Virus record (IMG/VR): IMGVR_UViG_3300023184_000026
Span: 233,259-297,258 of that record
Strand: one strand, 5' to 3'
DNA: 64,000 nt
How positions within the stretch are numbered: position 1 is the stretch's first letter; every line of letters begins with the position of its first letter. Made by a program: the position numbers and the translations under genes. Positions 16,784 to 48,906 of this stretch are shown here, piece after piece. A model generated the notes under the pieces. It saw nothing but the letters and a program-made list of their open reading frames with translations. It was not told the origin of the DNA and searched no databases.

Positions 16784-19700
16784 ATGATAGATACATACGA
16801 AAAACTGAATACATCCCTTACTCGCGTAGATTATATTGTTCATGTATCCGACATTCATATTCGATTGACCAAACGGCATGTAGAATATAGAGAAGTGTTT
16901 GCCAAACTATATGAAGAAATCAAAAAGACACCAGCAAACACAATCATTATAAATACAGGAGATAGTTTTCATTCAAAATGTGACCTTTCACCCGAGGCTG
17001 TGCAGATTGCAAGTGAGTTCTTCAAGGGTTTGTCTGATTTGCGTCCTACGATTGTTATTGCTGGTAATCATGATTGTTTGCTCACAAACACAACGAGATT
17101 AGATAGTTTGACTCCTATTGTAGATAATCTGGCACATGACAATCTTTATTATCTAAAAGAAAGCAAGTTGTATTCATTTGCTAATATTCTTATAAATAAC
17201 ATGTCTATTTTCACTGACCATACTTCATTCATAAAAATGAAAGATGTGACCAAGAAAATCAAGACAGAGTTTGATACAAAGATTGCTTTATTTCATGGTG
17301 GTGTATTTGACGCCAAGACTGATGTAGGTTATACTGTGACCAACAAGAGTATCATGAATGATATGTTTGATGGTCATGACATGGCACTGCTTGGAGATAT
17401 ACACATGGCACAAAATCTGCAAATGTATGATCCGGCAGCAGAAAAGCCAATCATTCGTTATGCTGGTTCGTGCATACAACAAAATCACGGCGAAGCATTG
17501 CTTGGCCACGGTATTTGTTTGTGGGACGTAAAGAACAAAGCATACAAGCATGTAGAAATACCAAATGATTATGGTTATTTTACTATTGATATTGATGACG
17601 GCAAGTTGATGACTGATATAATCACAATGCCCAAGAAGCCAAAACTTCGTGTGCGTTGCAAAGAAACCATTGCTACTGAACTAAAAAAGGTAGTAAATGA
17701 AATCAAAAAGACGCATGAAATCAGCGATATTATTTATATGCGAGTTGATGGCGATGACGCTTCTAAAGTCGTAAGTGTTCAAGCTGCTGCCAACTTGAGT
17801 CAGATTGGCAATGTTGATTATCAAAATAAACTTATTAGTGAAGCACTCAAAGCTAAATATCCAGATATTATGGATGATGACACACTTGAGTCTGTTCATA
17901 AAATCAATAAAGAACTCAATGCGGATTTGAGCAAAGATGATGCTTCACGCAACATTCGTTGGAAGCCAATCAAGTTTGAGTTTAGCAATATGTTTAGTTA
18001 TGGTGAAAACAATGTTATTGACTTTACCAAACTAGAATCTGTGTATGGATTGTTCGCAAATAATGCGAGCGGAAAATCATCATTGATGGACGCATTATGC
18101 TTTACAGCATTTGATAAAAGTGCCAGAGCATTCAAAGCAACTCATGTGATGAACTCACAAAAAATGTCTTTTCATGGCAAGTTTACATTTGAGATAAATG
18201 ACATACAATATGTTATTGAGCGCAAAGGCATCAGAGATAAAAAGGGCAATGTCAAAGTTGATGTAAACTTCTATAAGATGGAGAAAGAAGAAAAGATTAG
18301 CCTCAATAGTGAAGCTCGCAGAAGCACAAACGAAATCATTCGTGATTATATCGGCGATTATGATGACTTTGTACTCACTTCTCTTGCATTACAAGGAAAT
18401 CAAGGGTCGTTTGTTGAAATGGGTCAAACTGAACGCAAGGATTTGTTGTGTCAGTTCATTGGTCTGAATGTGTTTGATAAACTTGTGGCCAAGGGCAATG
18501 ACAAACTAAAAGAACTAACAGGTGCTATCAAGTCATTCAACAAAGAAAACAATCAAGTCAAGATTGAGTCCAATAAAAATGATTTGGGATTGGCAGAGTC
18601 CAAACTTATTGATTTGACTGGTCAACGCGATCAATATTCATCAAAAAAGAATGAACTTGATAATAAAATCGTTGAACAACAAGCCAAGATTATAAAACTT
18701 GAAAATGTGCCAACAAATGTATTTGCTCTAAAAAAAGAGCGCGAAACTTTAGAAACAAAAAATAGTCAAGCTGTTGATGCCATTTCAGTTATTGACACAA
18801 ACACAGAGTCAAAGAAAAAAGAATATGTGGATGCGTCTAATAAACTATCTGCATTTCCAGATGATCTAAAAGAAAAATCAGACAAGCATGCAAGTTTTGT
18901 TCGTCAAAAAACTCGTCTTGAGCAAGAATTGGAAAAATTTAAGCTCGTGGTCAAAGAAAAACTCAAGAAGATAGAACATCTATCCAACCACAAATATGAT
19001 CCAAATTGTGAATATTGCTGTGATAATGCGTTTGTAAAAGATGCTATATCTGCAAAAAATAGTTTGGAATCCGACAAAACTGATGCAAGAGAATTGTTTG
19101 ACGCCATATCAACCATAAAAACACAGATTATAGAAGTTGAACCATTTGTAGCTCAATATGAACAAAGTGTGCTGCTCAAAGAAACTATCAATACACTCAC
19201 AGCATTCATTTCCAAGAAAGAATTGGAAAAGTCTAATCTCAATAATTTAATTTCTAAAAACTCTAATAGAATAGTTGATATTGACAATCTGGTTGAGTTG
19301 TATGAAAAATCCAAAGAAATTGTAGAAAGCAACAAGATTGTTGAGGTTGTTTTATCCAAACTAAAGGATGAAAATACTGTCATTGTGTCAAAGCTAAAGA
19401 ATATTGAGCGAGAATATGTGGATGCGTATAGCCGCAAAGTGTCATTGACAGACCAAATAAAAAACATCGAAGAACAAATCAAGAAAATAGAAGAGCATGA
19501 AAACGAACTTGCTGCTTATCAATATTATCTAACTTCTATTGGAAAAGACGGCGTGCCATATAAAATTATTTCGGACGCCATTCCAAGAATTGAGCAAGAA
19601 GTAAATAATATATTGTCTCAGATGGTTGAGTTTAGTATGGGTATTGAAACAGATGGTAAGAATGTCAATGTATATATCAAATATGATGACAAAAAATGGC

Positions 19701-19990
19701 CATTGGAACTATGTTCTGGTATGGAAAAGTTTGTTAGTGCTTTGGCTTTACGAGTATCTTTGATCAACATCAGCAATCTACCGCGTTCCAACTTTTTGGT
19801 AGTTGACGAAGGAATGTCGGCTTTGGATGCGTCAAATCTTCCTATGCTACATACATTGTTTGACTATCTAAAGAGCAGCTTCGATTTCATTATTATAATA
19901 AGTCATCTTGATGCCATGAGAGACATGGTAGACAAACAACTGGAAATCAAAAAAGAAAACGGTTTTAGCAAGATTGATAACAGCGTCTAA
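16784..19990 (+). CDS. Fused Mre11/SbcD nuclease - Rad50/SbcC ATPase (gp47-gp46-like in one chain)
   Basis: Phosphoesterase motifs VHVSDIH, GDSFH, GNHD, FHG, GDIH; then Walker A ANNASGKSS, coiled coil with CEYCC zinc hook (~19007), CSGME signature, Walker B FLVVDEG, IISH; no stop between the halves. Confidence 0.9.
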   Translation: MIDTYEKLNTSLTRVDYIVHVSDIHIRLTKRHVEYREVFAKLYEEIKKTPANTIIINTGDSFHSKCDLSPEAVQIASEFFKGLSDLRPTIVIAGNHDCLLTNTTRLDSLTPIVDNLAHDNLYYLKESKLYSFANILINNMSIFTDHTSFIKMKDVTKKIKTEFDTKIALFHGGVFDAKTDVGYTVTNKSIMNDMFDGHDMALLGDIHMAQNLQMYDPAAEKPIIRYAGSCIQQNHGEALLGHGICLWDVKNKAYKHVEIPNDYGYFTIDIDDGKLMTDIITMPKKPKLRVRCKETIATELKKVVNEIKKTHEISDIIYMRVDGDDASKVVSVQAAANLSQIGNVDYQNKLISEALKAKYPDIMDDDTLESVHKINKELNADLSKDDASRNIRWKPIKFEFSNMFSYGENNVIDFTKLESVYGLFANNASGKSSLMDALCFTAFDKSARAFKATHVMNSQKMSFHGKFTFEINDIQYVIERKGIRDKKGNVKVDVNFYKMEKEEKISLNSEARRSTNEIIRDYIGDYDDFVLTSLALQGNQGSFVEMGQTERKDLLCQFIGLNVFDKLVAKGNDKLKELTGAIKSFNKENNQVKIESNKNDLGLAESKLIDLTGQRDQYSSKKNELDNKIVEQQAKIIKLENVPTNVFALKKERETLETKNSQAVDAISVIDTNTESKKKEYVDASNKLSAFPDDLKEKSDKHASFVRQKTRLEQELEKFKLVVKEKLKKIEHLSNHKYDPNCEYCCDNAFVKDAISAKNSLESDKTDARELFDAISTIKTQIIEVEPFVAQYEQSVLLKETINTLTAFISKKELEKSNLNNLISKNSNRIVDIDNLVELYEKSKEIVESNKIVEVVLSKLKDENTVIVSKLKNIEREYVDAYSRKVSLTDQIKNIEEQIKKIEEHENELAAYQYYLTSIGKDGVPYKIISDAIPRIEQEVNNILSQMVEFSMGIETDGKNVNVYIKYDDKKWPLELCSGMEKFVSALALRVSLINISNLPRSNFLVVDEGMSALDASNLPMLHTLFDYLKSSFDFIIIISHLDAMRDMVDKQLEIKKENGFSKIDNSV

Positions 19991-22256: not shown

Positions 22257-22264
22257 TATTTATA
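22257..22264 (+). promoter_or_regulatory. TATTTATA putative late-promoter motif
   Basis: 13 nt before ATG 22278. Confidence 0.55.
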
Positions 22265-22277
22265 TATACTTATAGGC

Positions 22278-25200
22278 ATGGACATTTCTATAAAAAACCT
22301 AAAAAAGTATATTTTTGAGCCAAAAACAGAGTCACTGCGTCTAAAAAGAGCCAATGAAATACTAAGTCAGAACATGGTCATCACCGAAAAGGTAGATGGA
22401 ACAAAACTAACATTGGTACGTACACAGCAAGTTGATAAAGCAGATTATACCAAGAATTGGGTTGTGGCATATAAAGGAACTGTATTGTATGCCAAAGAGT
22501 TTGCTCATTTAAATGATAAAGAAAAGGGTGATATATCTCAATCTTCTGTTGGCATTGGTCAATATTCCATGATATTTGATCATTTGTCCAAGATAAACAA
22601 TAAGATTAACAGTATTCCAAAGAGCACTGAGTTTAGCGTTGAGTTTGCTCAAAACAAAGACACATTAACTCGTACATATGTCAACAAGGGTGGCTTGTTC
22701 TTGAGAAGTTATGGTGAAGTGCAGTATCGTGTGGTTGGTGGAGATTTGCATACCATTCCGAAACAAGAAATAACAGACTACAAATCTGTGAAAAAGATGG
22801 CAGACTTGTTGGAAATATCATCATTTCCCATATTCTTTCAAGGAAAACTCAGCAAGGAAAATCTGCTGAAGAATCCTTTATTTGGATCAAAACTAACAAA
22901 TGTTGATTGGACCAATCCGACTGATGTTGTAACAAAATTTTCGGAGGCTATTCTGGCTGTTCCATCTACATTGGGTGGCACAACAGAAGGTGTGGTAATG
23001 AAGCTTGATAATGGAGAGTTCTTCAAGTTGGTGCAAGCCGATCAATATGATGCTGGAGTTCGTGGTGCAAAGAAGGACGCATATAAACTTGAACCAGAAG
23101 CCGCTTCAGCATACTTTCAACAAATCAGAGCATTGATACAAAATATTTTTGCTGCAATTGGTACTGAAGGAAAATCCGAAGAAGACGTTATTTCAGATTC
23201 AAATTTTTATGTTGCCAAGAATCAACCAAAGTTAAAAAAGTTCTTTGATGCTCTAAAACAGATTGCTGGTGACAAAAAGAATATTGTTCAAATCAAAGAT
23301 GATATTCATGATACAATTCGTTTGATGACATCCAAACAAGGTCTGTTGGGATCAACCAACAAAACGCTTGGTCTTATTCCAATTGCTGGCAAGCCATTGC
23401 ACATTGGTCATTGGAAGCTTATTGAAAAAGCAGCCAATGAAAATGATCGAGTCATTGTTTATACATCATCTTCCGACAGAATAAAGAAGGGTGAGTTTCC
23501 TATAAAGGGCGATGACTTTGTAAAACTATGGAGTGATGTGTTTATTCCATCTTTGCCAAAAAATGTAAAAGTAAAGTTTGTTGATTCTCCTGTTCGAGCT
23601 ATTATGCATGAACTTGGATGGTTGGAACAAAGATTGACTCAAGACGCCGCAGATATGCCAACCATAAATTTGTATTCTGACAAAGATGATGTTGAAATAA
23701 ACTTCAAAGACGAAGATTTAAAAAAGTATCCAGAGTTGTTGGCTGCTAATAAAATTAAAAAAATTGGTGTTGAAAGAACTACCACAGTGAATGTAAGTGG
23801 CACAAAAATGCGTGAATTTTTGATGAACAATGATAAAGAATTATTCTTGAAAAATCTTCCACCGGTCGGCAACAAAGACAAAGAAGAAATTTGGAATACT
23901 CTCATAGCAAACAAGCCAGAGCCGGTATCAGAAGTTAATCCATATATAAACTTTGCTGAGGAAGTTATAAATGAAATGGAAAAAGAAATGTTTAATGAAG
24001 GTGGTTGGAGATCTACTGCCACACAATCAACTATTATAACTCCAAAAAAAGTATCAAATATTTTGAGTGCAATGGATAAATTTGTATCAGAATTCAATTC
24101 ATATTCAAATCTTCCTCCAATAAAATCCAATGGACCGGTAGGTTCAGCAATGTATTATAAACAAGATTTGGAAAAAGATGATGTAGAATATGGTGATATA
24201 GATATTCAAATTATATTACCAGAAGAAACTAATGATAGAACATCACAACTAGCATCTAATAAAAAATATTCGGAAAAGATTATTCAATTTATTCAAGAAA
24301 AAAAACCAAGTTATATATATCCAAACTTTCAAGACGAAGACTTTGGTACGGGATATTTAATATTCAACGTTGGTGGTGAAAAAATTCAAGTTGATTTAGT
24401 TTTGTCATATAAAGTATCAGCAGAATGGACAAAAATTAGAACAACTCCGGAAAAAGGACTAAAAGGATTTGTTACTGGAAATCTATTGAGTGCATTATCC
24501 GATGCTCTTAATGTTGTGTTGGGATCAAACACCAATCCGTATGTAAATACGATAGATAATAAAGTTGCGTCATCTCTGATTAAAACAAACTCAAAGCATG
24601 TGTTCTTTAATCCAAATCAAGTATTTTTGGATATATTGAAGTTCTATGGCAATCTTGCTGGCGTTTCAAAAATAAATTCATCATTATTACAAGGTCATTA
24701 TGGATTGGATGCAAATGATCCATCATTAAAGAAAAAATGCGAAACCGTGGTTGCTTTGAGTAAAGCACTTGATAATAATAGAGCATTTGATAATGGAGTT
24801 GTTGTATCAAAAAATGGAACAACATTTAAATCCAGAGAAGAATTTGTAAAATATGTGCTGGATACATTCATAAAAAATATGAAATCGGCCAGCACTGCAA
24901 AAAAATTAGAAAAAGCAGAAACACCAGAAGCTATGAAAAATATTGAAAAGATAAAACGTGACGCAAATCTTGGTATAGAACTGGCCAAGCAACTTATTCG
25001 TGAAGAAATTGCATTATTGAATGAATCCGGTCAATCTGTTGCTGCTGTAGATGACAAAACGTCAAAGACCGTAAATGGTCAACCAGCCCAAGCCACCACC
25101 AAACTCAAGATTGTTGATCCACAAGGTAAAGACATTCGTTCTTCTGTATCTGCCGACATAAAAGAACTTATATATGCACTAAATAATAAGGTGGGTTTTT

Positions 25201-26198
25201 GGAAGAAAAATAATCCATATATTGAAAACGGATTTGTTTTCAATGGAAGTTCTCAATATCTAATGAGCGGCGATGAAAAATATAAAGATTTGTCCAAATA
25301 TAAATCTGGATTCGGTGATGTTGATGTGATTGTTCCAAAAGAAAAGTTGGACACAATGGAAGCATACCTAGATAGCATTGATGACAAGAAAGTTGAATGG
25401 AATGCAACATCAAAAAATAAAGTAAGCAAGAATTTTTATTATGTTGGTCGTACAAAAAATCAACGTGCCTTAGCCGGTCAAACAGTCACATTGTGGTATT
25501 ATGCTCCAGTAAAACAGGTTGTTCAAATTGACTTTGAAGGAGATGAAATGACATTGGACCCGCAAGGCTATGAAAAGCCATCTGAGTGGAACAAGTTTAT
25601 CAAAGATTCTCCATGGCAAGATTTGACAGCTGGCATCAAAGGATTGGCAGGAGCTATTTTATTACGCGGTTTGACACGAGCAGCAACCGCACTACCAAAT
25701 GCAGTGTATGTCACCAACTCAACTGCACTCAAGATACAATCTGGTCAGTTGAAGAGTTTGGTTGATGCCAAAGGCAAGAGTGTTGTATCAGTCAATGCTA
25801 CACATGCTCTACCAGCAGAATATACCCTCAATACAAGCGGTTCTGGTCATGCTGGTGTGCGCAAGGCATATCGTCTTGTAGCCAAGAATATGGACTATCA
25901 AGGTAAAAAAGTAGATGTTTATACCGACATTGCTGCCAGTGAAAGCAAACCAGAAGACCGTATCAACAGCGTAAATAAAGTATTTGAATTAATTTTTAAA
26001 CGCAAGCCAAGTGGTCAAGATATTGAAAATTTCAGAAGTTATGTTGGATTGCTAACACTCATGAAGACTCTACCAAAAGATGTTCAAGTAAAAGCACTGG
26101 AAAGAGCCAAAGAAGGTCTTGCTCAAGCGGGGTTGGAACCAGCAGAATATGCTCCAATTCAAAAAGCGGCTAAAACTATACTGGGAATATCCATATAA
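22278..26198 (+). CDS. Multi-domain nucleotidyltransferase: ligase/capping-like + HIGH cytidylyltransferase-like + two Pol-beta-type NTase domains
   Basis: TEKVDG (K at 22389) and EGVVMK..FKLV; PLHIGH (23400) and SGTKMR; GS...GDIDI (24141-24203)..QVD; GS...GDVDV (25245-25325)..QID. Start placed at ATG 22278 rather than the GTG at 22254. Confidence 0.75.
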   Translation: MDISIKNLKKYIFEPKTESLRLKRANEILSQNMVITEKVDGTKLTLVRTQQVDKADYTKNWVVAYKGTVLYAKEFAHLNDKEKGDISQSSVGIGQYSMIFDHLSKINNKINSIPKSTEFSVEFAQNKDTLTRTYVNKGGLFLRSYGEVQYRVVGGDLHTIPKQEITDYKSVKKMADLLEISSFPIFFQGKLSKENLLKNPLFGSKLTNVDWTNPTDVVTKFSEAILAVPSTLGGTTEGVVMKLDNGEFFKLVQADQYDAGVRGAKKDAYKLEPEAASAYFQQIRALIQNIFAAIGTEGKSEEDVISDSNFYVAKNQPKLKKFFDALKQIAGDKKNIVQIKDDIHDTIRLMTSKQGLLGSTNKTLGLIPIAGKPLHIGHWKLIEKAANENDRVIVYTSSSDRIKKGEFPIKGDDFVKLWSDVFIPSLPKNVKVKFVDSPVRAIMHELGWLEQRLTQDAADMPTINLYSDKDDVEINFKDEDLKKYPELLAANKIKKIGVERTTTVNVSGTKMREFLMNNDKELFLKNLPPVGNKDKEEIWNTLIANKPEPVSEVNPYINFAEEVINEMEKEMFNEGGWRSTATQSTIITPKKVSNILSAMDKFVSEFNSYSNLPPIKSNGPVGSAMYYKQDLEKDDVEYGDIDIQIILPEETNDRTSQLASNKKYSEKIIQFIQEKKPSYIYPNFQDEDFGTGYLIFNVGGEKIQVDLVLSYKVSAEWTKIRTTPEKGLKGFVTGNLLSALSDALNVVLGSNTNPYVNTIDNKVASSLIKTNSKHVFFNPNQVFLDILKFYGNLAGVSKINSSLLQGHYGLDANDPSLKKKCETVVALSKALDNNRAFDNGVVVSKNGTTFKSREEFVKYVLDTFIKNMKSASTAKKLEKAETPEAMKNIEKIKRDANLGIELAKQLIREEIALLNESGQSVAAVDDKTSKTVNGQPAQATTKLKIVDPQGKDIRSSVSADIKELIYALNNKVGFWKKNNPYIENGFVFNGSSQYLMSGDEKYKDLSKYKSGFGDVDVIVPKEKLDTMEAYLDSIDDKKVEWNATSKNKVSKNFYYVGRTKNQRALAGQTVTLWYYAPVKQVVQIDFEGDEMTLDPQGYEKPSEWNKFIKDSPWQDLTAGIKGLAGAILLRGLTRAATALPNAVYVTNSTALKIQSGQLKSLVDAKGKSVVSVNATHALPAEYTLNTSGSGHAGVRKAYRLVAKNMDYQGKKVDVYTDIAASESKPEDRINSVNKVFELIFKRKPSGQDIENFRSYVGLLTLMKTLPKDVQVKALERAKEGLAQAGLEPAEYAPIQKAAKTILGISI

Positions 26199-26255: not shown

Positions 26256-26897
26256 ATGAAACACGCAAAAAATACATCAAACATAGATATAGTTCGCTCA
26301 TATTTGAATAATGAGCGACCATTTTTACAAGTCGGATATACCGGAGATCATGACAAATATATAATCCGTAAAGAGGGAGAAAAATGGTCCGATTCGAGCG
26401 GCAAGCAGTGGATACAAACTGCGACCGGCCCACGCTCTGTTACGCGAGTAATGGATATAATACGAGATGAGGTTGATGATAAATGCTCTTGCTGTGGAAG
26501 AGAAATACGATGGGGTACGAAGCAAGACAGAAAGATGTTTCATAAAACCAAAAAATGTCTTGATTGTGTTTCCGAAGAAGAAACATCTCTTAGAATAAAA
26601 GGACAATTCAAATTGTATGAAACTAAAAAAATGATTGAGAACGAAATTTCATATTTAGCCGACATTAAACAAAAACTACGAGAAAGTAAGGATTATCTCG
26701 AAAGCGATGATTCAAAAATTCTCACGTGGGCAAACCAAACCGGCATGGTGGAGGAATGGAGCAATGAAGCGAGAGGAGAATTGAAAGAACGTATTCAAAA
26801 AGATTGGTCCACTTGCCTTAAAAAAATAAAAACTGCCGAAAAAGAATTGAAAAAAGTGAACGAAAAAATAAATGAAATTTTAAAAGAAAAAAATTGA
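26256..26897 (+). CDS. Hypothetical protein with two CxxC pairs and C-terminal coiled coil
   Basis: KCSCCG...KKCLDC; start placed at ATG 26256 (MKHAK) rather than the GTG at 26220. Confidence 0.6.
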   Translation: MKHAKNTSNIDIVRSYLNNERPFLQVGYTGDHDKYIIRKEGEKWSDSSGKQWIQTATGPRSVTRVMDIIRDEVDDKCSCCGREIRWGTKQDRKMFHKTKKCLDCVSEEETSLRIKGQFKLYETKKMIENEISYLADIKQKLRESKDYLESDDSKILTWANQTGMVEEWSNEARGELKERIQKDWSTCLKKIKTAEKELKKVNEKINEILKEKN

Positions 26898-26927: not shown

Positions 26928-28862
26928 ATGAAGATTCTTTATATAGCACCTCACCTTTCAACCGGTGGATGTCCCCAGTTCTTGCTCAAGAAAATACAAG
27001 TTTTACACAAAGATCATGAAATTTATTGTGTTGAATACTCAAATCATGGCGGCTTTACTGTTCAAAGAAACCAAATAAAGGAGATTCTTGGAAACAGATT
27101 CATAGAACTTGGTGAAGATAAAATGAATCTTCCGAATATCATAGACCGAATAAATCCGGAAATTGTTCATTTGGAAGAAATGCCAGAATATTTCATGGAT
27201 GGCAATTTGGCAGTAAAATTGTATGACAAAAACAGAAAATATAAAATAATTGAAACATCCCACGACAGCAGTTTCGACGCAAGAAATAAAACATTTTTCC
27301 CTGATAAGATACTGTTCGTAAGCAAGTATCAACTTGAATCTTTGAAATCATTGGATGTAGCAATGGATGTGTGTGAATATCCAATAGTAATTAAGCCAAG
27401 AAAGCCTCGGGCGGAAGCGTTGAAGGTACTTGGACTTGACCCAAATAAGAAACATATTATAAATGTTGGATTATTTACTCCAAGAAAAAATCAAGCTGAG
27501 ATAATTAGGTATGCTAAGATGTTGAAGGACTATCCAGTCCAGTTTCATTTCATCGGCAATCAGGCGGATAATTTTAAGTTTTATTGGGAACCATTGATGA
27601 AAGATTTTCCGAGCAATTGTGTGTGGTGGAACGAACGTAAAGACGTTGAAAATTTTTACCAAATTGCGGATCTTTTTCTATTCACTTCGCGAGGAACCAT
27701 ACATGATAAAGAAACAAGTCCTCTTGTGATTAGAGAAGCTATATCGTTCAATGTTACGTCGTTAATATATAATCTACCAGTGTATCTTGGAATGTATGAC
27801 AAATATGAAAATATAAACTATCTCAATTTTGAAAGTATGCAAGACAACTGCTCAAAAATACTAAACTCTCTGAAAATTAAACCAAACAATATTATGCCAG
27901 AATTTATAGAAAAACAAGAAGATATCAAGATAGGATACGACCGTTCAGAAAACAAGATTGAATATCTGTCCAAACACGATATTCCAAATGCAATCGTGTC
28001 GGTAAAGGACATAGACTCAAAAACGGTGTTGTATGCAGCACAACATGAAATTTTGAACGCCAATATAAATTATTGGATTATTCCCGTACACAAGAGTCAT
28101 AGAGATTTTGAAACAGATATCCTTTTTGGTGGAATGACTGTTGATGTATATAGTGGAGAAAATTTATTACACTCCAAAGATTTCAGAATACGGGTCGTCA
28201 ATGTAGAAAAGCCAGTACTGAAAACAAAGAATAATATCACTCCAACATATAATAACTATATGGAGTTTTTTGTTCACGGTGAATACAATGAATATTTGAA
28301 AGGAAAAGAGTTTAACACCGTTGTTGATGTTGGTGCCAACGCCGGTATCTGGGTTGAATATATCAAGTATGTAGCCAAATGCAAAAAGATATATGCAATA
28401 GAACCAAACACACAAGCATTAAAAACATTGAGAGATACATATACATCGGATGAATTGACCATAATAGACAAAGCATTGTGTGATAAAGATGGTGAATTGG
28501 AGTTTTTCATAGATCCCAGCAATTCTACCATAGGATCAATCAAGAAAAATCATCAAGACAGTTTGGTTGTTTCTCACAAAATACAAGGAATTTCATTTCG
28601 CACTTTTATCAAGGAAAATAATATTGATCATATAGATTTGATGAAAATGGACATAGAAGGTGGCGAATATCCATTTTTTGATAGCATGCAGAAAGAAGAT
28701 CTGGATAAAATTGGAACAATATTGGTTGAATATCACATGCAAGGTGGTCAAACCATAGACAAAGAAGTTGCAATATTATTGGCATTGTTGCGCGGGTCTG
28801 GATTCAAATACACCATAAAACATCAACACTCTGGCGGTGGGTTTATAGTTGCAACCAAATAA
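26928..28862 (+). CDS. GT4-family glycosyltransferase fused to FkbM-family methyltransferase
   Basis: GT-B: LYIAPHLSTGG, NVGLFTPRKNQ, ETSPLVIREA; C-terminal VVDVGANAG, YAIEPN, LMKMDIEGGE. Confidence 0.85.
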   Translation: MKILYIAPHLSTGGCPQFLLKKIQVLHKDHEIYCVEYSNHGGFTVQRNQIKEILGNRFIELGEDKMNLPNIIDRINPEIVHLEEMPEYFMDGNLAVKLYDKNRKYKIIETSHDSSFDARNKTFFPDKILFVSKYQLESLKSLDVAMDVCEYPIVIKPRKPRAEALKVLGLDPNKKHIINVGLFTPRKNQAEIIRYAKMLKDYPVQFHFIGNQADNFKFYWEPLMKDFPSNCVWWNERKDVENFYQIADLFLFTSRGTIHDKETSPLVIREAISFNVTSLIYNLPVYLGMYDKYENINYLNFESMQDNCSKILNSLKIKPNNIMPEFIEKQEDIKIGYDRSENKIEYLSKHDIPNAIVSVKDIDSKTVLYAAQHEILNANINYWIIPVHKSHRDFETDILFGGMTVDVYSGENLLHSKDFRIRVVNVEKPVLKTKNNITPTYNNYMEFFVHGEYNEYLKGKEFNTVVDVGANAGIWVEYIKYVAKCKKIYAIEPNTQALKTLRDTYTSDELTIIDKALCDKDGELEFFIDPSNSTIGSIKKNHQDSLVVSHKIQGISFRTFIKENNIDHIDLMKMDIEGGEYPFFDSMQKEDLDKIGTILVEYHMQGGQTIDKEVAILLALLRGSGFKYTIKHQHSGGGFIVATK

Positions 28863-28868
28863 AATATT

Positions 28869-29498
28869 ATGGCAAACGGAGTATACAGAATAACAGAAGA
28901 GTTTGAGGAAAAATTGGCAAAATATACTGGTGCTCCATATGTAGTCACCGTGGATAATCAAAGCAATGCTTTGTTTTTATCATTATATTATCAAAATATA
29001 AAAGGACAGTCTATTAGCATTCCTTCCCGCACGTACCCGAGTGTACCATGTGAGATCATACATGCTGGCGGAAAGGTAAACTTTGAACCGGTTGAAGGCA
29101 AGACCATCAAGGGTGCATATCAGCTCAAGCCCACGCGCACGTGGGACAGCGCATTGCGCTTTACTGCCAACATGTATATTCCAAATTCGTTCATGTGCAT
29201 ATCTTTTACCGGTCCATATAAGCACTTCAAATTAAGCAAGGGTGGTGCTATTCTTACAGACGATCTTCATGCATATCATTGGTTTAAGCGTGCCAGATAC
29301 AGCGGCAGAAGAGAATGTTCATATCATGATGACAATCTGGATATGCTAGGTTGGAATTTTTACATGATGCCGGAACTTGCTGCCAGAGGATTGTTGCTTA
29401 TGGGTCAGTTTTATAACATGGACGGCACACCAAAACATAATGAAGATTTGGAGCTACCATATCCAGACTTATCCAAATTTGATGTGTATAAGCAATGA
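28869..29498 (+). CDS. Short DegT/DnrJ/EryC1/StrS-type PLP sugar aminotransferase
   Basis: FEEKLAKYTGAPYVVTV..NALFLSL, IPSRTYPSV, WDSA, SFTGPYKHFKLSKGGAILTDD, GWNFYM; only 209 aa. Confidence 0.75.
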   Translation: MANGVYRITEEFEEKLAKYTGAPYVVTVDNQSNALFLSLYYQNIKGQSISIPSRTYPSVPCEIIHAGGKVNFEPVEGKTIKGAYQLKPTRTWDSALRFTANMYIPNSFMCISFTGPYKHFKLSKGGAILTDDLHAYHWFKRARYSGRRECSYHDDNLDMLGWNFYMMPELAARGLLLMGQFYNMDGTPKHNEDLELPYPDLSKFDVYKQ

Positions 29499-30052
29499 TT
29501 AGAAAATTCCAAAACTATACAGAGGATGAAATGAATGAGTCTGGTATGACTTTTGGTAAAAATGTATATATTGCCAATGATGTTATCATTCATAATGCCC
29601 AGAATATAATCATAGGAGACAATGTTCGCATAGATACTCAATGTGTATTGATTGCTGGAAAAAATCACAAAATAAAAATTGGAAATAGCGTACATATTTC
29701 GGCAGGATGCTATTTTTATGGCAATTCCGGAAATATAACTCTGGGAGATTGTTGTTGCACTTCCGGTCGCTGCATTCTTTATACCGCAAATGATGATTAT
29801 ACAGACGGCTATATGGCCAATTCTGTGATAGATGATAAGTACAAAAAGGTGGTTGCTGGAAACATAGAGTTAAAAAAACATGCGTTGGTTGGATGTTATA
29901 CAGTAATACTTCCAAATGTTGTTTTGGAGCATGCCACGTCTGTAGGCGCACACTCGCTGATTACAAAATCTACTTCTCATTTTGATGTTGTGGCGGGTTG
30001 CCCAGCTAAATTTATAAAGAAAAGAAAAAATGTTTATTTGACAGATGTATAA
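29495..30052 (+). CDS. Hexapeptide-repeat (left-handed beta-helix) acetyltransferase
   Basis: FGKNVYI, IGDNVRI, IGNSVHI, LGDCCC repeats; VGAHSLI..DVVAGCPAKFIKKR C-terminus. Confidence 0.85.
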   Translation: MIRKFQNYTEDEMNESGMTFGKNVYIANDVIIHNAQNIIIGDNVRIDTQCVLIAGKNHKIKIGNSVHISAGCYFYGNSGNITLGDCCCTSGRCILYTANDDYTDGYMANSVIDDKYKKVVAGNIELKKHALVGCYTVILPNVVLEHATSVGAHSLITKSTSHFDVVAGCPAKFIKKRKNVYLTDV

Positions 30053-30845
30053 AGGAAAAAAAGTCATACTTACTACGACAGCGTGCAAAAGAATAAATCT
30101 TCTTAAAGCCGCAATACAAAGTTTTAGTATATTCTGCCAAGATAAGAATATAATAGATGAAATACACTATTATGACGACTCTTCGCAGCCACACGAAAGA
30201 TCAACGGCGATTGAGTATTATCATAAGCATATACCAAGTGCCAATTTGATATTCAGATTTTTTGAGAAGGAGACATTTCCAGACAACTATAGACATGCGA
30301 GAGTATTGAACTTCTGGAGAAATGGTATAGAAAGTTCAAATGCCGATTATGTATTTCATCTGGAAGATGATCATCAGTTTTATAATATGTTTAATATAGG
30401 TGAAGCTATAGATATTATGGAACAATATCCAGAGTATGCTTATATGGGCTATTGTCAAAGTTGGAAAAATTTTCCAGTTGATATGATGCCAAAGAAAATA
30501 ATAGGGAACTTTTGGGAGACGATTTATCTTGACAACAGGCCAATGAATGATTTATTATTCTTGGATGATGTTATGGCTATGCATACTGGACTAGATTGGT
30601 GGATGTATTATATTAATTGGCCGTATTTTTCTTTGCGGCCTGGAGTACATCATGTCAAGAAGCTGCTTTCCGTGGGAGATTTTTCCACAACATATGATCG
30701 TGAAAAAACAAGCGTTGAGTTGGAGTTTGCCATACGATGGAAAAATATGGGGTACAAAAGCATGATGTGCAAGTATTTTACTTCTCTACACACTGGTCAA
30801 GATCCAGAACTTAGCGCATACAAAATCAACAACTCAGCAAGATGA
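30045..30845 (+). CDS. GT-A fold glycosyltransferase (GT2-like)
   Basis: ILTTTACKR, HYYDDSS and YVFHLEDD (DXD-like) motifs; inside the glycosylation island. Confidence 0.65.
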   Translation: MYKGKKVILTTTACKRINLLKAAIQSFSIFCQDKNIIDEIHYYDDSSQPHERSTAIEYYHKHIPSANLIFRFFEKETFPDNYRHARVLNFWRNGIESSNADYVFHLEDDHQFYNMFNIGEAIDIMEQYPEYAYMGYCQSWKNFPVDMMPKKIIGNFWETIYLDNRPMNDLLFLDDVMAMHTGLDWWMYYINWPYFSLRPGVHHVKKLLSVGDFSTTYDREKTSVELEFAIRWKNMGYKSMMCKYFTSLHTGQDPELSAYKINNSAR

Positions 30846-32149
30846 ACGAACAAACATTTCAAAATATATGGACAGAATGCCTTGGGTTCAATATTGAACA
30901 AAAGCCAGAAGAATATAAACAGCTGCTTTCACTGCTTGATGATAGAAAGAACAAGCGTTATGCTCTTGAAATAGGCTCAAATTATGGCGGAACCACTGCT
31001 GGATTTTGTCAGTTATTTGATACGGTAATAACAATAGACATCAAACACCATATCAATTTTGATAGACTTAAACGGAAGCATCCCACATACCAATATATTA
31101 TTTCGGATTCCAAGAGCAATGATACATTGGAATATATCAAAAGTCTTGGAATTAAATTTGATTTCATCTTTATTGATGGCGACCATTCATACAATGGGGC
31201 AAAAAATGATTATGACAAATATAAGCAATTTTTGGCATATGATGGGCATATAGGATTTCATGACATCATCTCAAGCGACCTTAATCGCCAATACGACATA
31301 AATGTGGACATTCTTTGGAAAGAAATAAAAGACACATATAACGATGTTCACGAATTTGTGGCTACATCAAAACACTCTGATTATAGCAGGCAGAATGAAT
31401 TTCATGAAATAGTTGGAAAAAACGATTATTCACAATGGGGAGGTATTGGAGTATTAAAAAATACACCAATTGGAGTTTTTTCTCATAACTATCTTACCAA
31501 TCATTGGTATGACATTGTTAATAGCCAGCTTTTAAAACTGAGCAATTCTGGTCTATACAAGCGAGCGGACAAAATTGTTTATGGAGTCAATGTTGATAAG
31601 GATGACGTATATCATAGTTTTATTGGGCTGTTGGACAAATATGATATAGACAGAAAGATAGAAGTATATCGTTATACAAAAAACATGTATGAGTTTCCCA
31701 CACTTATTCATCTACAGAATTATTGTGCCAACAATCCAAATGCATCCGTAGTGTATTATCACGCAAAAGGAACATCTCGCTCGTATGATCGCAACATAGA
31801 GTCTTGGAGAGAATGTCTTGAATATTTTAACATAGAACAATGGAAAAAATGTCACACTGAAATTATTACAGGAAAACACGATGTGTGTGGAGCATTGCAT
31901 GTTGATAAATTTGAGTTTTTGGATAAAGTACTTACAAACTATTATTCTGGCAATTTCTGGTGGGCAAGTGCAAAGTATATAAATACACTTGACAATATAA
32001 CCGCAAAAATGATAGAAGTAAATATGGAAAGAGCCGAAGCTGAAAGATGGATAGGTAGAAAACCACATCGCTGGGCCAGCCTATATAATGAAAATATATC
32101 GGATTGGTATATGCATTACTTTGATCCAAAATTATATAAACGACCATGA
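30842..32149 (+). CDS. Class I SAM methyltransferase fused to a putative glycosyltransferase-like domain
   Basis: ALEIGSNYGG, FDFIFIDGDHSY, IGFHD (Methyltransf_24-like); C-terminal VVYYHAKG...WRECLEYF...YSGNFWWA domain. Confidence 0.7.
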   Translation: MNEQTFQNIWTECLGFNIEQKPEEYKQLLSLLDDRKNKRYALEIGSNYGGTTAGFCQLFDTVITIDIKHHINFDRLKRKHPTYQYIISDSKSNDTLEYIKSLGIKFDFIFIDGDHSYNGAKNDYDKYKQFLAYDGHIGFHDIISSDLNRQYDINVDILWKEIKDTYNDVHEFVATSKHSDYSRQNEFHEIVGKNDYSQWGGIGVLKNTPIGVFSHNYLTNHWYDIVNSQLLKLSNSGLYKRADKIVYGVNVDKDDVYHSFIGLLDKYDIDRKIEVYRYTKNMYEFPTLIHLQNYCANNPNASVVYYHAKGTSRSYDRNIESWRECLEYFNIEQWKKCHTEIITGKHDVCGALHVDKFEFLDKVLTNYYSGNFWWASAKYINTLDNITAKMIEVNMERAEAERWIGRKPHRWASLYNENISDWYMHYFDPKLYKRP

Positions 32150-33909: not shown

Positions 33910-34004
33910 TAAGTTTTTGATTGAAATTGGGTCAAATAAGTTTCATCATGATAAATTAGAAATATTTGCAGATTCAAATAAAAGTTTTATAAAATTAAAA
34001 TAAT

Positions 34005-41128: not shown

Positions 41129-41440
41129 ATGACAAAATCACAACTAAAACAACTAATCAGAGAAACAATAAATGATTATGAATCCACACAGCCACAAAAG
41201 GTTGTTGGAAAATACATCTATTTTGTTGATTCTAAAGAGTTGTATAGTTTAAAGCCGTATAAACTTGTCAAAGATGGTGGATGCGATATATCTCTGTCAA
41301 ATAATTGGACAAAAGCAACAGTGATGCAAGGACAAGATGTTAGAGATATGGGAATCGACAGCGTTACAGACATATCGGCTTGGTATATTGTAAACAATGC
41401 TCCATCAGATCATGCATATACTGCATATATTGGAAAATAA
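41129..41440 (+). CDS. Small protein with putative capsid-targeting leader
   Basis: MTKSQLKQLIRETIND N-terminus; in the head operon. Confidence 0.6.
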   Translation: MTKSQLKQLIRETINDYESTQPQKVVGKYIYFVDSKELYSLKPYKLVKDGGCDISLSNNWTKATVMQGQDVRDMGIDSVTDISAWYIVNNAPSDHAYTAYIGK

Positions 41441-41443
41441 AAA

Positions 41444-41935
41444 ATGAACGACACCAAGCAAATCATCCGTGAATTAGTTGAAGAAGTCATTGAAGAAATG
41501 ACATCAACGGGTGCTGTTGCTGGTTATCAAACACCAGCAGCATTTCGTGGTCATAAAAGCAAAAAGAAATCAGCAGAACGTAGTATGCCAGGTGGCAAAG
41601 TTGTAGGCAAAGAAGACACAGATAATACAACAGTTGGCGAAGGTGAAACACTAACATTGCGTCGTGATATTGGTATTATGGAAGGTCGCAGCCGCTATCG
41701 TAATTTTAAAGATAGTGACATGATGAAAAATCATGCTAAAATTTCGTATGGTATCAATCAAGCAAAAAAAATGCTTGGTGAAGTTGAATATCTATTAAAC
41801 ATCTGTGAACGTCTCAAGACCGAAGCAGATGTTCCAGCCACAAGTTTGTGGGCACGTACTCAACCAGACATGAAAGAAATTCATGGTCGATTGAAAGAAA
41901 TTGCCAAAAGAATCAACAGAATGGGAAAAAAATAA
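41444..41935 (+). CDS. Putative prohead core/internal protein
   Basis: MNDTKQIIRELVEEVIEE N-terminus; internal IME-GR site; in the head operon. Confidence 0.6.
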   Translation: MNDTKQIIRELVEEVIEEMTSTGAVAGYQTPAAFRGHKSKKKSAERSMPGGKVVGKEDTDNTTVGEGETLTLRRDIGIMEGRSRYRNFKDSDMMKNHAKISYGINQAKKMLGEVEYLLNICERLKTEADVPATSLWARTQPDMKEIHGRLKEIAKRINRMGKK

Positions 41936-41940
41936 AATTT

Positions 41941-42489
41941 ATGAATCTAACAGACATTGCTAAAAAGATTTTGAAAGAGGACAGCTGGGGGAACAAAACG
42001 TCCGATGCTGGTGGTATGTCACTTGGACGAACACCAACTGCCGTTCAACCACCACCGGCTCAAAGTGGAAATATTGTTGATATTTCTCAATCGTTCAGAA
42101 ACTTCAAACTTGAATTAGAAAAGCAAGAAGATGTCACTATCAAGAAGTTTACCGAACAACTCAAGAAACAATTTCTAAAAAAAATAGCTACCGTAAAAGC
42201 CTCCAAAGGCAGTATTGGTCAAATTGAGAAAGAATATACTATCACAGTCACCAACGTCGAGACTCGTTATATGAAAGATAAGTACTATGTAGTATTTGTC
42301 GGAAAAGAAGGCAATGCTGGCGAGTCTGAATATTATCTAGATGATTCACAAATTAAAGTAAATCCGGCAACATCGCAGACCTCTGCGGGGGCGCAACAGT
42401 CTGCACTGAAGAATGTTGGTGGCGTTATTCCAATGCAGCCAAGCAATCAACCGGTACAAACCGCAAAAAACATTCTTCCACAAGGATAA
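41941..42489 (+). CDS. Putative internal head protein
   Basis: Start placed at ATG 41941 (MNLTDIAKKILKE-DS) to avoid a long overlap with the upstream gene. Confidence 0.6.
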   Translation: MNLTDIAKKILKEDSWGNKTSDAGGMSLGRTPTAVQPPPAQSGNIVDISQSFRNFKLELEKQEDVTIKKFTEQLKKQFLKKIATVKASKGSIGQIEKEYTITVTNVETRYMKDKYYVVFVGKEGNAGESEYYLDDSQIKVNPATSQTSAGAQQSALKNVGGVIPMQPSNQPVQTAKNILPQG

Positions 42490-42494
42490 TACAC

Positions 42495-43121
42495 ATGAGC
42501 AAACAACTATTAGTAGATTTTATTCCATTTGACATCACTCCGCAGATGCTTACAGAAGCAAAAGCAAATACTGGTGGTCCATTGGTTCTCAAAGGTCCAT
42601 TACAAAAAGCCGGTGAAAAGAATCACAATGGTCGTGTATATCCACGCGAAGTATTGGAGCGTGAAGTTGAAAAATATCAACAAATCATCAAAGAACGTCG
42701 TGCTTTGGGTGAACTTGATCATCCAGAATCCAGTATCATCAATCTAAAGAATGTATGTCACAATGTTACAGAATGTCACTGGGAAGGTGATACTGTGGTT
42801 GGTACTATTGAAATTCTAACCACACCAAGTGGTAATATTGCAAGAGATTTGATTAAAAACAATATTCGCATTGGTATTAGCAGTCGCGGTTTGGGAAGTG
42901 TTCGCAATGTGAATGAAAATACTGTTGAAGTACAAGATGACTTTGAACTATTGTGTTTTGACCTTGTATCTTCACCAAGCACACGTGGTGCTTATATGAA
43001 TCTTGCCGAAGGCATAAATCGTGAAAAACAATTGATTGGTGGCAATCAAGATCGCAAAGACATCAACAAATATTTAAAAATTGAAAATATCATTCGTGAT
43101 ATATTATCAGAAACCCGTTAA
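42495..43121 (+). CDS. gp21: Prohead core protease, T4 gp21-like
   Basis: KNHNGRVYP, ALGELDHP (His), GISSRGLGS (Ser), FDLVSSPS (Asp). Confidence 0.93.
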   Translation: MSKQLLVDFIPFDITPQMLTEAKANTGGPLVLKGPLQKAGEKNHNGRVYPREVLEREVEKYQQIIKERRALGELDHPESSIINLKNVCHNVTECHWEGDTVVGTIEILTTPSGNIARDLIKNNIRIGISSRGLGSVRNVNENTVEVQDDFELLCFDLVSSPSTRGAYMNLAEGINREKQLIGGNQDRKDINKYLKIENIIRDILSETR

Positions 43122-47179: not shown

Positions 47180-48793
47180 ATGTCAATTAAATCATTACTA
47201 ACTGAGACAACCAATCCAATGGTTAAGCTCATGACCGAAACTCGCGGTCTTGTCTCCAAGTGGGAAAAGACCGGACTTCTAGAAGGCATCAAGAGCGACA
47301 TGGAAAAGTCACACATGTCCATCCTTCTGGAAAATCAAGCAAAACAACTGATCGACGAAGCAACCCGCACGGGTACTTCATCGAACTCCGAACAATGGGC
47401 TGGCGTTGCTCTCCCACTAGTTCGCCGTGTTTTCGCAGAAATCGCCGCGAAGGAATTCGTGTCGGTTCAACCAATGAATCTTCCTTCTGGTCTGGTGTTC
47501 TATCTGGACTTCAAGTATGGTTCTGGCCAATCTGGCAAGCCAAGTTTCAAGGACAATTCTTTGTTCGGTGGAACAGGTACTAAATTGGGTTCTACCGACA
47601 GCGCAACCAACGGTCTATATGGCCAAGGTCGTTTCGGTTACACCATCAATGATGTTCTCGCAACACCAGCTATGGTCACAGGTTCTCTTAGCACAGCAAA
47701 TGCTCCAACTTGGGAAAACATCAACTTCACTGAAGAACTGAGTGCTTCATTGTCAAACGGCGGAATCCAATCCGTTACTGTATCGTTGAGTGGAACAAAC
47801 TTCGACGCCAATGGCGCTCGTGCGTTTACCGTTTCTGGTTCGGGCATCGTCGATTTCTATCCTGCGTTTACACGAGTTTCTGGTACAAGCGTAATCTTTT
47901 ACGTTTCTGGATCAGCCATCAGTGGAAACTCTCTGGTTGGATATCACAAACAACCGGGCGACGCAAGTCGTGGCGACTTCGAAGATAAAGGTGACGGATT
48001 GCCAAACACCACGGGTGTTGCGGACGACATCGGAATTCCAGAAGTTAACTTGGAACTGAAGAGCGAAGCTATTGTAGCTAAGACCCGCAAGCTGAAAGCC
48101 GTCTGGACACCAGAATTGGCCCAAGACTTGAATGCATACCACAGCATCGATGCTGAAGCCGAATTGACGGCTCTTCTATCGGAATACGTTTCAATGGAAA
48201 TCGACCTAGAAATCCTTGACATGTTGATCACCAATGCTCCGGCGACCACAACCGACTTCTGGTCTGCACGCATTGGATCTGAATATGACGTGACAACCCG
48301 TCTGTTCAAGGACACAGCTGCTAACCGCACTGCATATGTCAAGAGCACATGGTTCCAAACCTTGGGCAACAAGATCCAAAAGGTCTCGAACAAGATTCAC
48401 CAATTGACACTGCGCGGTGGTGCAAACTTCCTAGTTTGCTCCCCAGACGTTGCTACAATCATTGAATCCATTCCAGGCTTCAGCACCAACACGGACGGCG
48501 ACCAAGCCAAGTTCGCAATGGGTGTGGCCAAAGTTGGCGCTCTGAGCAACCGTTGGACAGTATACAAGAACCCATACATGACAGACAATGTTATGTTGGT
48601 AGGTTTCCGTGGAACAAACTTCCTAGAAACCGGCGCTGTGTACGCTCCATACATCCCACTGATTCAAACACCGTTGGTGTATGACCCAGTGAACTTTACA
48701 CCACGTCGTGGCGTAATGACACGTTATGCCAAGAAGATGATAAGACCTGAGTTCTACGGCAAGATCATCATTGGCAACTTAAACGAAGTCTAA
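47180..48793 (+). CDS. gp23: Major capsid protein, T4 gp23-like
   Basis: FVSVQPMNLPSGLVFYLDFKY; AKTRKLKAVWTPELAQDL..H.IDAEAEL; YAPYIPL..FTPRRGVMTRYA. Confidence 0.97.
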   Translation: MSIKSLLTETTNPMVKLMTETRGLVSKWEKTGLLEGIKSDMEKSHMSILLENQAKQLIDEATRTGTSSNSEQWAGVALPLVRRVFAEIAAKEFVSVQPMNLPSGLVFYLDFKYGSGQSGKPSFKDNSLFGGTGTKLGSTDSATNGLYGQGRFGYTINDVLATPAMVTGSLSTANAPTWENINFTEELSASLSNGGIQSVTVSLSGTNFDANGARAFTVSGSGIVDFYPAFTRVSGTSVIFYVSGSAISGNSLVGYHKQPGDASRGDFEDKGDGLPNTTGVADDIGIPEVNLELKSEAIVAKTRKLKAVWTPELAQDLNAYHSIDAEAELTALLSEYVSMEIDLEILDMLITNAPATTTDFWSARIGSEYDVTTRLFKDTAANRTAYVKSTWFQTLGNKIQKVSNKIHQLTLRGGANFLVCSPDVATIIESIPGFSTNTDGDQAKFAMGVAKVGALSNRWTVYKNPYMTDNVMLVGFRGTNFLETGAVYAPYIPLIQTPLVYDPVNFTPRRGVMTRYAKKMIRPEFYGKIIIGNLNEV

Positions 48794-48852: not shown

Positions 48853-48906
48853 GTCAAAATATTTTGATGTTTGAGATTTATGATTGATATATATAGATAT
48901 AATTCT

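Follow-up and report, generated by a model that had tools for sequence, protein, structure and literature searches.

A putative capsid-delivered polyprotein of four nucleotidyltransferase modules in an uncultured far-T4 phage

The prohead protease gp21 of phage T4 has the cleavage consensus L/I-x-E, and the T4 leader reads MKTYQEFIAE. Proteases of the gp21 type cut C-terminal to glutamate and remove capsid-targeting sequence (CTS) propeptides (PMC5694885, PMC9026906, PMC3012670). Injected proteins that carry a CTS and are processed by gp21 are already known, as are the multiply cleaved ejection proteins of phiKZ-like phages, the polyvalent proteins (PMC5512222) and repair by ligases together with nucleotidyltransferases (NTases). 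An RNA ligase paired with a Pol-beta NTase is a well-established theme in RNA repair, where RlaP adds one or two nucleoside monophosphates to damaged RNA 3′ ends before ligation (PMC7824862, PMC12776372). Here, we describe a gene in a stretch of 64,000 nt from IMG/VR virus record IMGVR_UViG_3300023184_000026 (positions 233,259 to 297,258 of the record; the whole stretch is referred to as the window), the product of which is a putative packaged polyprotein of four nucleotidyl-transfer domains, termed D1 to D4.

The gene lies at 22278..26198 on the + strand. Its reading frame (22254/22278..26198) is open throughout, and counted from the ATG at 22278 it encodes 1306 aa (145.8 kDa) without an internal stop. 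The original prediction for this DNA had claimed four nucleotidyl-transfer domains from three superfamilies, joined by protease-type linkers; AlphaFold2 models and Foldseek comparisons confirmed the domains and the superfamilies, with weak E-values for D3 and D4, and every motif that had been quoted is present in D1, D2, D3 and D4 of the 1306 aa ORF. The quoted residues are invariant or nearly so in 28–37 relatives at 42–91 % identity. We consider it probable, at about 70 %, that the product is a late polyprotein which is taken up into proheads, divided by the S77 protease into three enzymes and delivered with the DNA.

D1 (aa 1–357; 22278..23348, + strand) resembles covalent NTases of the ATP-dependent ligase type and has a helical C-terminal part. 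Its motifs I (K38, in K38-V-D40-G41), III (E122), IV (E237-G238) and V (K250) are all invariant in 37 sequences; the motifs of the original prediction were located at aa 36–41 (TEKVDG), 237–242 (EGVVMK) and 249–252 (FKLV). Models were built from alignments of 37 relatives for D1-D2 and 28 relatives for D3-D4. The D1-D2 model has a mean predicted local distance difference test score (pLDDT) of 89.3 and a predicted template modelling (TM) score of 0.84, and in it D1 and D2 form one rigid unit. Foldseek matched D1 in the PDB to T4 Rnl2 (2hvr, E=1e-7; 1s68, E=7.5e-6), the fungal Trl1 ligase domain (9qw7) and the Naegleria RNA ligase (5cot). Against the Pfam family PF09414 (RNA_ligase), D1 itself scored 21.2 bits (E=3.5e-4), under the gathering cutoff of 27, and several relatives have a precomputed hit to the same family. 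The modelled adenylyltransferase fold and the motifs place D1 among the Rnl2-like covalent NTases, as a putative RNA ligase with a Pfam score below the gathering level. NCBIfam and PADLOC searches returned nothing for D1, D3 or D4.

D2 (aa 358–545; 23349..23912, + strand) is a predicted Rossmann-type nucleotidylyltransferase with the HIGH signature. Its two motifs, PLHIGH (373–378) and SGTKMR (507–512), contain H375-I-G377-H378 and S507-G-T509-K-M-R512, which are invariant among the relatives. Library scans gave weak Pfam, NCBIfam and PHROG matches to pantoate ligase, cytidylyltransferase-like and NMNAT families, and in a PDB sequence and profile search with D1-D2 the HIGH segment alone was matched. 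The structural neighbours found by Foldseek were archaeal NMNAT (1m8k, 4yp5), NadM (2r5w), PPAT and ATP sulfurylase, with E-values of 1e-4 to 1e-3 and TM-scores on the target of 0.55–0.65, and the model confirms membership of the HIGH-signature nucleotidylyltransferase fold. The NMNAT-specific signature GxFxPxHxGH is absent from D2, which reads AGKPLHIGH, and scores for TIGR01526, TIGR01527 and PF01467 lay far under the curated cutoffs. We treat D1-D2 as a single enzyme because the two domains form one rigid body in the model and one gene in Campylobacter phages of the genus Firehammervirus and in Va1-like Vibrio phages. A role for D2 as a sugar-activating enzyme for the nearby glycosyltransferase block was rejected as the main reading, the block not being beside the gene in the related contigs L009 and L010.

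D3 (aa 575–916; 24000..25025, + strand) and D4 (aa 917–1306; 25026..26195, + strand) are NTase-like modules of the Pol-beta fold; the putative mature N-terminus of D3 is GGWR, and D4 matches PHROG 19290, a family of unknown function. The key residues of D3 are G622-S623, D640-x-D642, D706 and K729-G730 (GS, 622–623; GDIDI, 639–643; QVD, 704–706; GLKG, 727–730), and those of D4 are G990-S991, D1014-x-D1016, D1085 and K1121-G1122 (GSS, 990–992; GDVDV, 1013–1017; QID, 1083–1085; GIKG, 1119–1122). In both domains the Pol-beta hG[GS] motif, the [DE]x[DE] motif and the third carboxylate are all invariant, and the predicted strands and helices follow the expected order. The D3-D4 model has a pLDDT of 85.6, with D3 at ~90. 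Its top 50 Foldseek matches in the PDB all belong to the Pol-beta superfamily (Pol mu, Pol beta, cGAS, OAS1, PAP, TUT7), with probabilities of up to 1.0, a best E-value of 9.5e-3 and a TM-score on the target of ~0.35, figures that do not distinguish whether D3 or D4 was the domain matched. Among viral models (BFVD), the best match was a phage multidomain protein annotated as ParB/Srx (E=1.5e-17), with family X polymerases of giant viruses next. ESM Atlas leads for D4 to viral poly(A) polymerase catalytic domains (scores 0.87–0.91, low recognition) were treated as weak.

The paralogy of D3 and D4 that had been proposed stands at the level of profiles and is undetectable by pairwise BLASTP (E=1.5, not significant). 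Profile–profile comparison of the two families with hhalign gave a probability of 91 % and an E-value of 1e-6 over 170 columns, in an alignment that spans the N-terminal GG, the GS, DxD and third-Asp motifs and G[LI]KG; on this profile alignment, D3 and D4 are homologous. None of 42 D3-family and 40 D4-family members matched any NTase Pfam family at E≤0.01, and sequence and profile searches of the PDB with D3 and D4 returned nothing.

Linker 1 (aa 546–574; 23913..23999, + strand) is a variable helix that ends in F-N-E574, with a putative scissile bond E574|G575 at nt 23999/24000. Linker 2 (aa 904–916; 24987..25025, + strand; KQLIRE909-EIALLNE916) carries two conserved [LI]-x-E sites, with a putative bond E916|S917 at nt 25025/25026. 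Both appear in the models as low-confidence or helix-then-coil segments, the pLDDT being low at aa 551–554 and 574–576 and below 50 at aa 909–916. The original prediction had let the linkers run to 24005 and 25031; the linkers are real, but those ends include the GG and SG pairs, and the bonds lie before them.

A search of 5.8 billion proteins yielded 76 relatives in three architectures: full-length D1-D2-D3-D4 proteins of ~1300 aa (37 of them at 51–97 % identity to the window protein), D1-D2-D4 proteins of ~950–1030 aa and D1-D2-D3 proteins of ~910 aa. Junctions were counted in 38 full-length sequences. At junction 1, P1 is Glu and P1′P2′ is GG in all 38, and P3 is L, F, V, M or I in 37; junction 2 reads E|SG with L or I at P3 in 38/38. 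Linker 2 has an extra site, Q[LI][ILV][RK]E (LIRE909), seven residues upstream of junction 2, which keeps L/I at P3 and Glu at P1 in 36/36 sequences and is merged with junction 2 in two others, P0036 and P0040. Over the whole 1306 aa, [LIVMF]-x-E is kept in at least 90 % of sequences at only seven positions, three of which fall in the two linkers.

The three-domain variants join or end exactly at the junction bonds. On contig L004, D4 is a gene of its own immediately behind the D1-D2-D3 gene, with a 20 aa leader that ends LIKE|SG, so that the D4 product starts MNNYTQLFWESVKKSFLIKE|SGQSVAAVD. Distant D1-D2 relatives have N-terminal leaders of 17–35 aa ending in [LIF]-x-E right before the first strand of D1. 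Conservation of the junctions, together with module loss and splitting at these bonds, bears out the reading of the linkers as protease-type sites. It had also been asked whether relatives encode the domains as separate leader-bearing genes, and they do: D4 in L004, and distant standalone D3 and D4 proteins that have CTS-like leaders or start at GG. An N-terminal candidate site in the window protein, I-F-E14|P, was rejected, E14 being unconserved and the segment belonging to the D1 fold.

D3 and D4 belong to a much wider set of proteins. A profile search of 1.84 billion cluster representatives gave 652 hits, most of them single-domain proteins (D3-like, ~340 aa, or D4-like, ~400 aa), plus other fusions, and the family comprises >600 clusters at 50 % identity. 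These proteins start either with MGGW or MGGN, or with a short leader that ends in [ILV]-x-E right before GGW or GGN (MRAKEFIIE|GGW, MKQTEFISE|GGW, MKSFKQFLLE|GGN). Among the cluster representatives, the residue before GGW is Glu in 62/66, with I, L or V at P3 in 61/66, and 16 start leaderless with MGGW; before GGN the counts are 18/20 for Glu and 19/20 for L or I at P3, with 19 leaderless MGGN starts. In multidomain proteins D3 follows DUF6267, a HIGH-type NTase, an amidoligase, GGACT or other modules, and again an [ILV]-x-E motif precedes it. It is difficult to see why the mature start should stay fixed with or without a leader if the leader or upstream domain were not taken off. All members from cultured phages are annotated as hypothetical, and no Pfam family covers them.

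Two side observations concern this family. P0084 and P0095 (~950–990 aa) represent a second type of polyprotein, in the order DUF6267, IDE|GGW D3, LITE|GGN D4-like. The end of DUF6267 carries a stretch like ligase motifs IV and V (GEGYVF..KYVSRSKF) that hints at another ligase-like NTase; when DUF6267 was aligned with D1 by hhalign, the probability was 1.5 % and that stretch alone was aligned. The genomic context of one standalone D3-like gene (L006) was uninformative, and tblastn with a standalone D3-like protein found no cultured phage.

The presumed processing enzyme of the polyprotein is encoded at 42495..43121 (+ strand), a T4 gp21-type prohead protease (PHROG 207, E=9e-53; Pfam Peptidase_S77, 89 bits, cutoff 27). 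The motif of linker 2 recurs in the head proteins of the same phage. Residues 55–60 of the major capsid protein (MCP; 47342..47359, + strand) read KQLIDE|A, a propeptide cleavage-type site, and the Pfam Gp23 match begins past it, at residue 71. Three small head-module ORFs just upstream of the protease gene (41129..42489, + strand) have the N-termini MTKSQLKQLIRE.., MNDTKQIIRE.. and MNLTDIAKKILKE.., the same leader. Within the window, K-Q-L-I-[RD]-E is confined to linker 2, MCP residues 55–60 and the N-termini of four small ORFs, including one at 15129. The claim that the linkers match the leader and cleavage motif of head proteins is upheld for linker 2 by this shared KQLI[RD]E. The fourth small ORF, at 15129–15695 (+ strand), encodes 188 aa without a family hit, starts MKRSELKQLIRETIEE with the leader of the small head-module ORFs, and has a RuvC-like resolvase gene on one side and the primase gene on the other; its product may likewise be targeted to the capsid, although the gene is not part of the head module.

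In published work, mass spectrometry of virions of Campylobacter phage IBB_35 detected homologues of D1-D2 and D4. Gene 1-56 was found at 17 % coverage, and genes 2-25 and 2-24 at 2.9 % and 23.7 % (PMC3322345 Table S2). The first is a D4 homologue that starts MKLSELMFILE|GGN, and the other two are a split D1-D2 gene, 98–99 % identical to CPt10_0251. Packaging, as originally predicted, is in this way documented for homologues; for the window protein itself, we infer cleavage, packaging and ejection. In relatives the gene directly precedes a 206 aa gene, a small gene, the terminase large subunit gene (TerL) and the portal gene, and every cultured phage with D1-D2 also has a D4-like gene. In Va1-like Vibrio phages (Va1, L002 1512–2666, 3986–5440), the leaderless D4-like Va1_161 (MGGN...) lies 1.3 kb upstream of the D1-D2 gene Va1_166, and in the Campylobacter phages the two genes are far apart. 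The neighbours of the D1-D2 homologues, CPt10_0261 (Campylobacter phage CPt10) and Va1_167 (Vibrio phage Va1), were considered and are not D3 or D4 homologues. The portal gene of a D1-D2-D4 relative (L009/L010, 11269–14082) contains an intein (Pfam Intein_splicing and Portal_T4).

Late expression is suggested by the octamer TATTTATA at 22257..22264 (+ strand), 13 nt ahead of the ATG of the polyprotein gene, a putative late promoter element that also precedes the portal gene and other structural genes of the window. The window has 22 copies on both strands, against 7.7 expected; 13 are on the + strand, of which 9–10 sit 5–30 nt upstream of structural-gene start codons. Starts with the octamer at this distance include 2645, 20025, 22278, 38241, 40252, 44289, 57792 and 63123, and the copies upstream of starts on the + strand were noted at 2619, 14187, 19995, 22257, 38208, 40230, 44276, 57771 and 63109. 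The octamer is probably the late promoter element of this lineage. Although the octamer is the reverse complement of TATAAATA, the late −10 box of T4, here it is read on the coding strand; the late motif that had been claimed upstream of the gene is present, but in the direction of transcription it reads TATTTATA and not TATAAATA.

In the model that we favour, the gp21-type serine protease would cut the polyprotein during head maturation after E574 and E916, and probably after E909 as well. The predicted products are a 65 kDa unit, in which the Rnl2-like ligase is packed against the HIGH-motif adenylyltransferase, a 38 kDa Pol-beta-fold NTase starting GGWR and a homologous 43 kDa NTase starting SGQS; all three would remain in the head until they pass into the cell together with the DNA. 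As to function, the original prediction had offered RNA repair, NAD+ restoration and AMPylation as possibilities. We tentatively propose, by analogy with RNA ligase plus RlaP or CCA-adding enzymes, a kit for RNA-end repair that would be injected and at hand ahead of all phage gene expression. Nucleotides at damaged 3′ ends would be put back by the Pol-beta-type enzymes, after which the ligase would close the break, and RNase-based immunity of the host would be blunted. RNA-end repair is our first choice because the pairing of an RNA ligase with a template-independent Pol-beta NTase recurs in RNA repair. A broader proposal is possible but on balance doubtful: D3 and D4 would represent a large unannotated family of capsid-delivered Pol-beta-fold NTases, concatenated here with a ligase/HIGH-NTase unit into a polyprotein processed by the prohead protease; the mature N-terminus (GGW or GGN) would always be exposed, by removal of Met, removal of a leader or polyprotein cleavage; and the products would form a nucleic-acid end-repair system, injected to act before phage transcription and to defeat RNase-based immunity.

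Several observations weigh against packaging and processing, or against RNA repair. The window protein has no N-terminal CTS, a point that the original prediction did not raise, and starts MDISIK within the D1 fold, so that its targeting would need the internal linkers or another route. P3 of junction 1 is often F, outside the classical T4 preference for L or I. The support from virions comes from relatives; the IBB_35 proteomics used gel bands of purified lysate with low coverage of the D1 piece, and contamination is not excluded (PMC3322345). The Foldseek E-values of D3 and D4 against the PDB are just ~1e-2, and the two domains match neither RlaP (PF10127) nor the CCA-adding families. The protein lacks an end-healing kinase or phosphatase, the window lacks tRNA genes, and RNA repair leaves D2 unexplained.

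The best PDB and BFVD hits of D3 and D4 are family X enzymes (Pol mu, Pol beta and the PolX of Catovirus, Harvfovirus and Pithovirus), and the ESM Atlas neighbours of a D3-like cluster include giant-virus PolX-ligase fusions. An alternative function is thus the repair of DNA ends or nicks, in which, after ejection, PolX-like modules would carry out filling or tailing at termini or nicks of the injected genome, perhaps using ribonucleotides. Sealing by the ligase would follow and would protect or circularize the DNA, by analogy with giant-virus PolX-ligase enzymes and bacterial LigD. Rnl2-type ligases do seal nicks in duplexes. We consider such a DNA repair kit unlikely: D1 matches RNA rather than DNA ligases and has no OB domain, the TM-scores to PolX are low (0.34–0.47), evidence of an 8 kDa lyase or finger domain is lacking, and D2 is again left unexplained. 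A role against the host is a little harder still to accept. Packaged takeover or anti-defence effectors, in which D3 and D4 would act through AMPylation of host or defence proteins or by making or depleting signalling nucleotides while D2 regenerates NAD+ or another adenylylated cofactor, would fit the Pol-beta NTases among predicted virion-delivered polyvalent proteins (PMC5512222), the NMNAT- and NadM-like fold of D2 and the fusion of D3 elsewhere to ParB/Srx, Amidoligase_2, GGACT and DUF6267, typical modules of conflict proteins. However, no PADLOC or anti-defence family was hit, the GxFxPxHxGH spacing of NMNATs is missing from D2, an NMNAT by itself cannot rebuild NAD+ from ADP-ribose and nicotinamide, and the obligatory fusion of D2 to the ligase would go unexplained.

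The most improbable of the alternatives is that the protein is neither packaged nor cleaved. It would then be a large multifunctional enzyme of the cytoplasm, serving RNA repair or a metabolism of nucleotides or nucleotide sugars linked to the glycosyltransferase block, and the conserved E-GG and E-SG would be structural features of domain starts. The missing leader of the window protein, the leaderless D1-D2 proteins of the Campylobacter and Vibrio phages and the glycosyltransferase genes that adjoin the gene in the window and in contig L007 all speak for it, but in L009 and L010 that block is not beside the gene. Structural conservation of domain starts is also difficult to reconcile with leaderless homologues that start exactly with MGG while others have variable leaders ending in [ILV]-x-E, with the separate, leader-bearing D4 of L004, with the motif shared with the MCP propeptide site and with the detection of homologues in virions. 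Processing and delivery with the DNA remain our preferred account.

The window comes from a large phage and carries a T4-type head module, in which a terminase large subunit, a portal (Pfam Portal_T4), the prohead protease of the gp21 type (Peptidase_S77) and a capsid protein of the Gp23 family are encoded. By capsid protein, the nearest cultured phages are Microcystis phage Mel-JY01 (59 %), Flavobacterium phage immuto (55 %) and Rhodothermus phage RM378 (38 %), which places the phage among the far-T4 relatives. The phage is uncultured, its source being metagenomes only, and a nucleotide search of cultured phages gave no match. Between a conserved 213 aa gene (26256–26897) and the terminase genes lies a block of ~9 kb (26928–36125, + strand) with glycosyltransferase, methyltransferase, aminotransferase-like and GtrB-like genes; the same position is empty or otherwise filled in relatives L007–L010, so that the block looks like an inserted glycan-modification cassette. 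At 16784–19990 (+ strand), a single 1068 aa ORF matches SbcD-like (aa 16–333) and SbcC-like (aa 295–1066) PHROGs, so that it fuses the two nuclease subunits. Directly 3′ of the capsid gene, the product of 48871–49659 (+ strand) resembles, by eye only, a GIY-YIG homing endonuclease (GIYKITN...KFYIGSS), and that of 49685–50479 (+ strand) has, also by eye only, a signal-peptide-like N-terminus and the DRGH-type motif of non-specific nucleases.

In the literature, we found no description of the ligase/HIGH-NTase/two Pol-beta architecture, of a prohead protease that frees several enzymes from one chain in a T4-type phage, or of the D3/D4 family itself. If our reading is correct, T4-type heads carry whole sets of nucleotidyl-transfer enzymes, beyond small inhibitors and Alt, and the prohead protease doubles as a polyprotein processor in the manner of RNA-virus proteases; phage ligases of the Rnl2 type, which have long lacked an explanation, would be tied to a possible role in repair at time zero. 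The broader family proposal, if true, would add a mode of counter-defence delivery not described for T4-type phages. The analysis also offers a testable function for very common ‘hypothetical proteins’ of phages (PHROG 19290 and D3 relatives), which occur as well in Campylobacter and Vibrio phages considered for biocontrol, and a sequence rule, [ILV]-x-E followed by GG at a module start, for predicting injected proteins in metagenomic phages.

T4 Rnl2 is the best structural match of D1 and shares with it all the covalent NTase motifs and the helical C-terminal part, but sequence identity is ~14 %, the Pfam score lies under the PF09414 cutoff, motif V of D1 has a single Lys (K250) and D1 is permanently fused to a HIGH-type NTase. 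T4 Rnl2 is not known to be a virion protein. At the level of modules, a parallel is the combination of an ATP-dependent RNA ligase with template-independent Pol-beta NTases in RNA ligase–RlaP and CCA-adding systems (PMC12776372, PMC7824862). Here, unlike those systems, the modules are fused in a putative virion protein, without a healing kinase or phosphatase and with an extra HIGH-type NTase, and D3 and D4 match neither PF10127 nor any Pfam NTase family.

Polyvalent proteins (Iyer, Burroughs, Anand, de Souza, Aravind 2017, PMC5512222) likewise combine many effector domains in one chain that is predicted to be packaged and injected; Pol-beta NTases are listed among them, and D3 homologues occur with ParB/Srx and amidoligase modules. 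The window protein resembles them in having four enzymatic modules in one chain and, in relatives, a gene beside TerL and the portal gene. Polyvalent proteins, however, are usually anchored to MuF or portal domains and released by embedded peptidases, whereas release here would occur in trans, through the prohead protease acting at CTS-like linkers; no MuF, portal or peptidase domain was found in the polyprotein by Pfam or PHROG search, and the ligase/HIGH-NTase unit was not found among the architectures described in that work. The ejection (E) or inner-body proteins of phiKZ, 201phi2-1 and SPN3US form large sets of head proteins in which a protease related to gp21 recognizes a short motif and cuts C-terminal to its Glu, often at multiple sites per substrate, and enzymes (the virion RNA polymerase) are delivered to the host. 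Their motif is S/A-x-E as opposed to I/L/F-x-E here, and they belong to another phage lineage and involve other enzymes.

The internal proteins IPI–III and Alt of T4 are comparable in the gp21-family protease encoded in the genome, in short leaders that end hydrophobic-x-Glu, in a diverse cargo that shares the leader alone and in delivery with the DNA (PMC3012670, PMC9026906, PMC5694885). This phage has the S77 protease and an accessible hydrophobic-x-Glu at the module boundary, but the window protein is without the N-terminal CTS of the T4 proteins, and its cargo consists of NTases as opposed to a restriction inhibitor or an ADP-ribosyltransferase. The processing would differ from the T4 arrangement as well: here several enzymes are concatenated, cleavage would fall in internal linkers and the head would keep more than one mature product.

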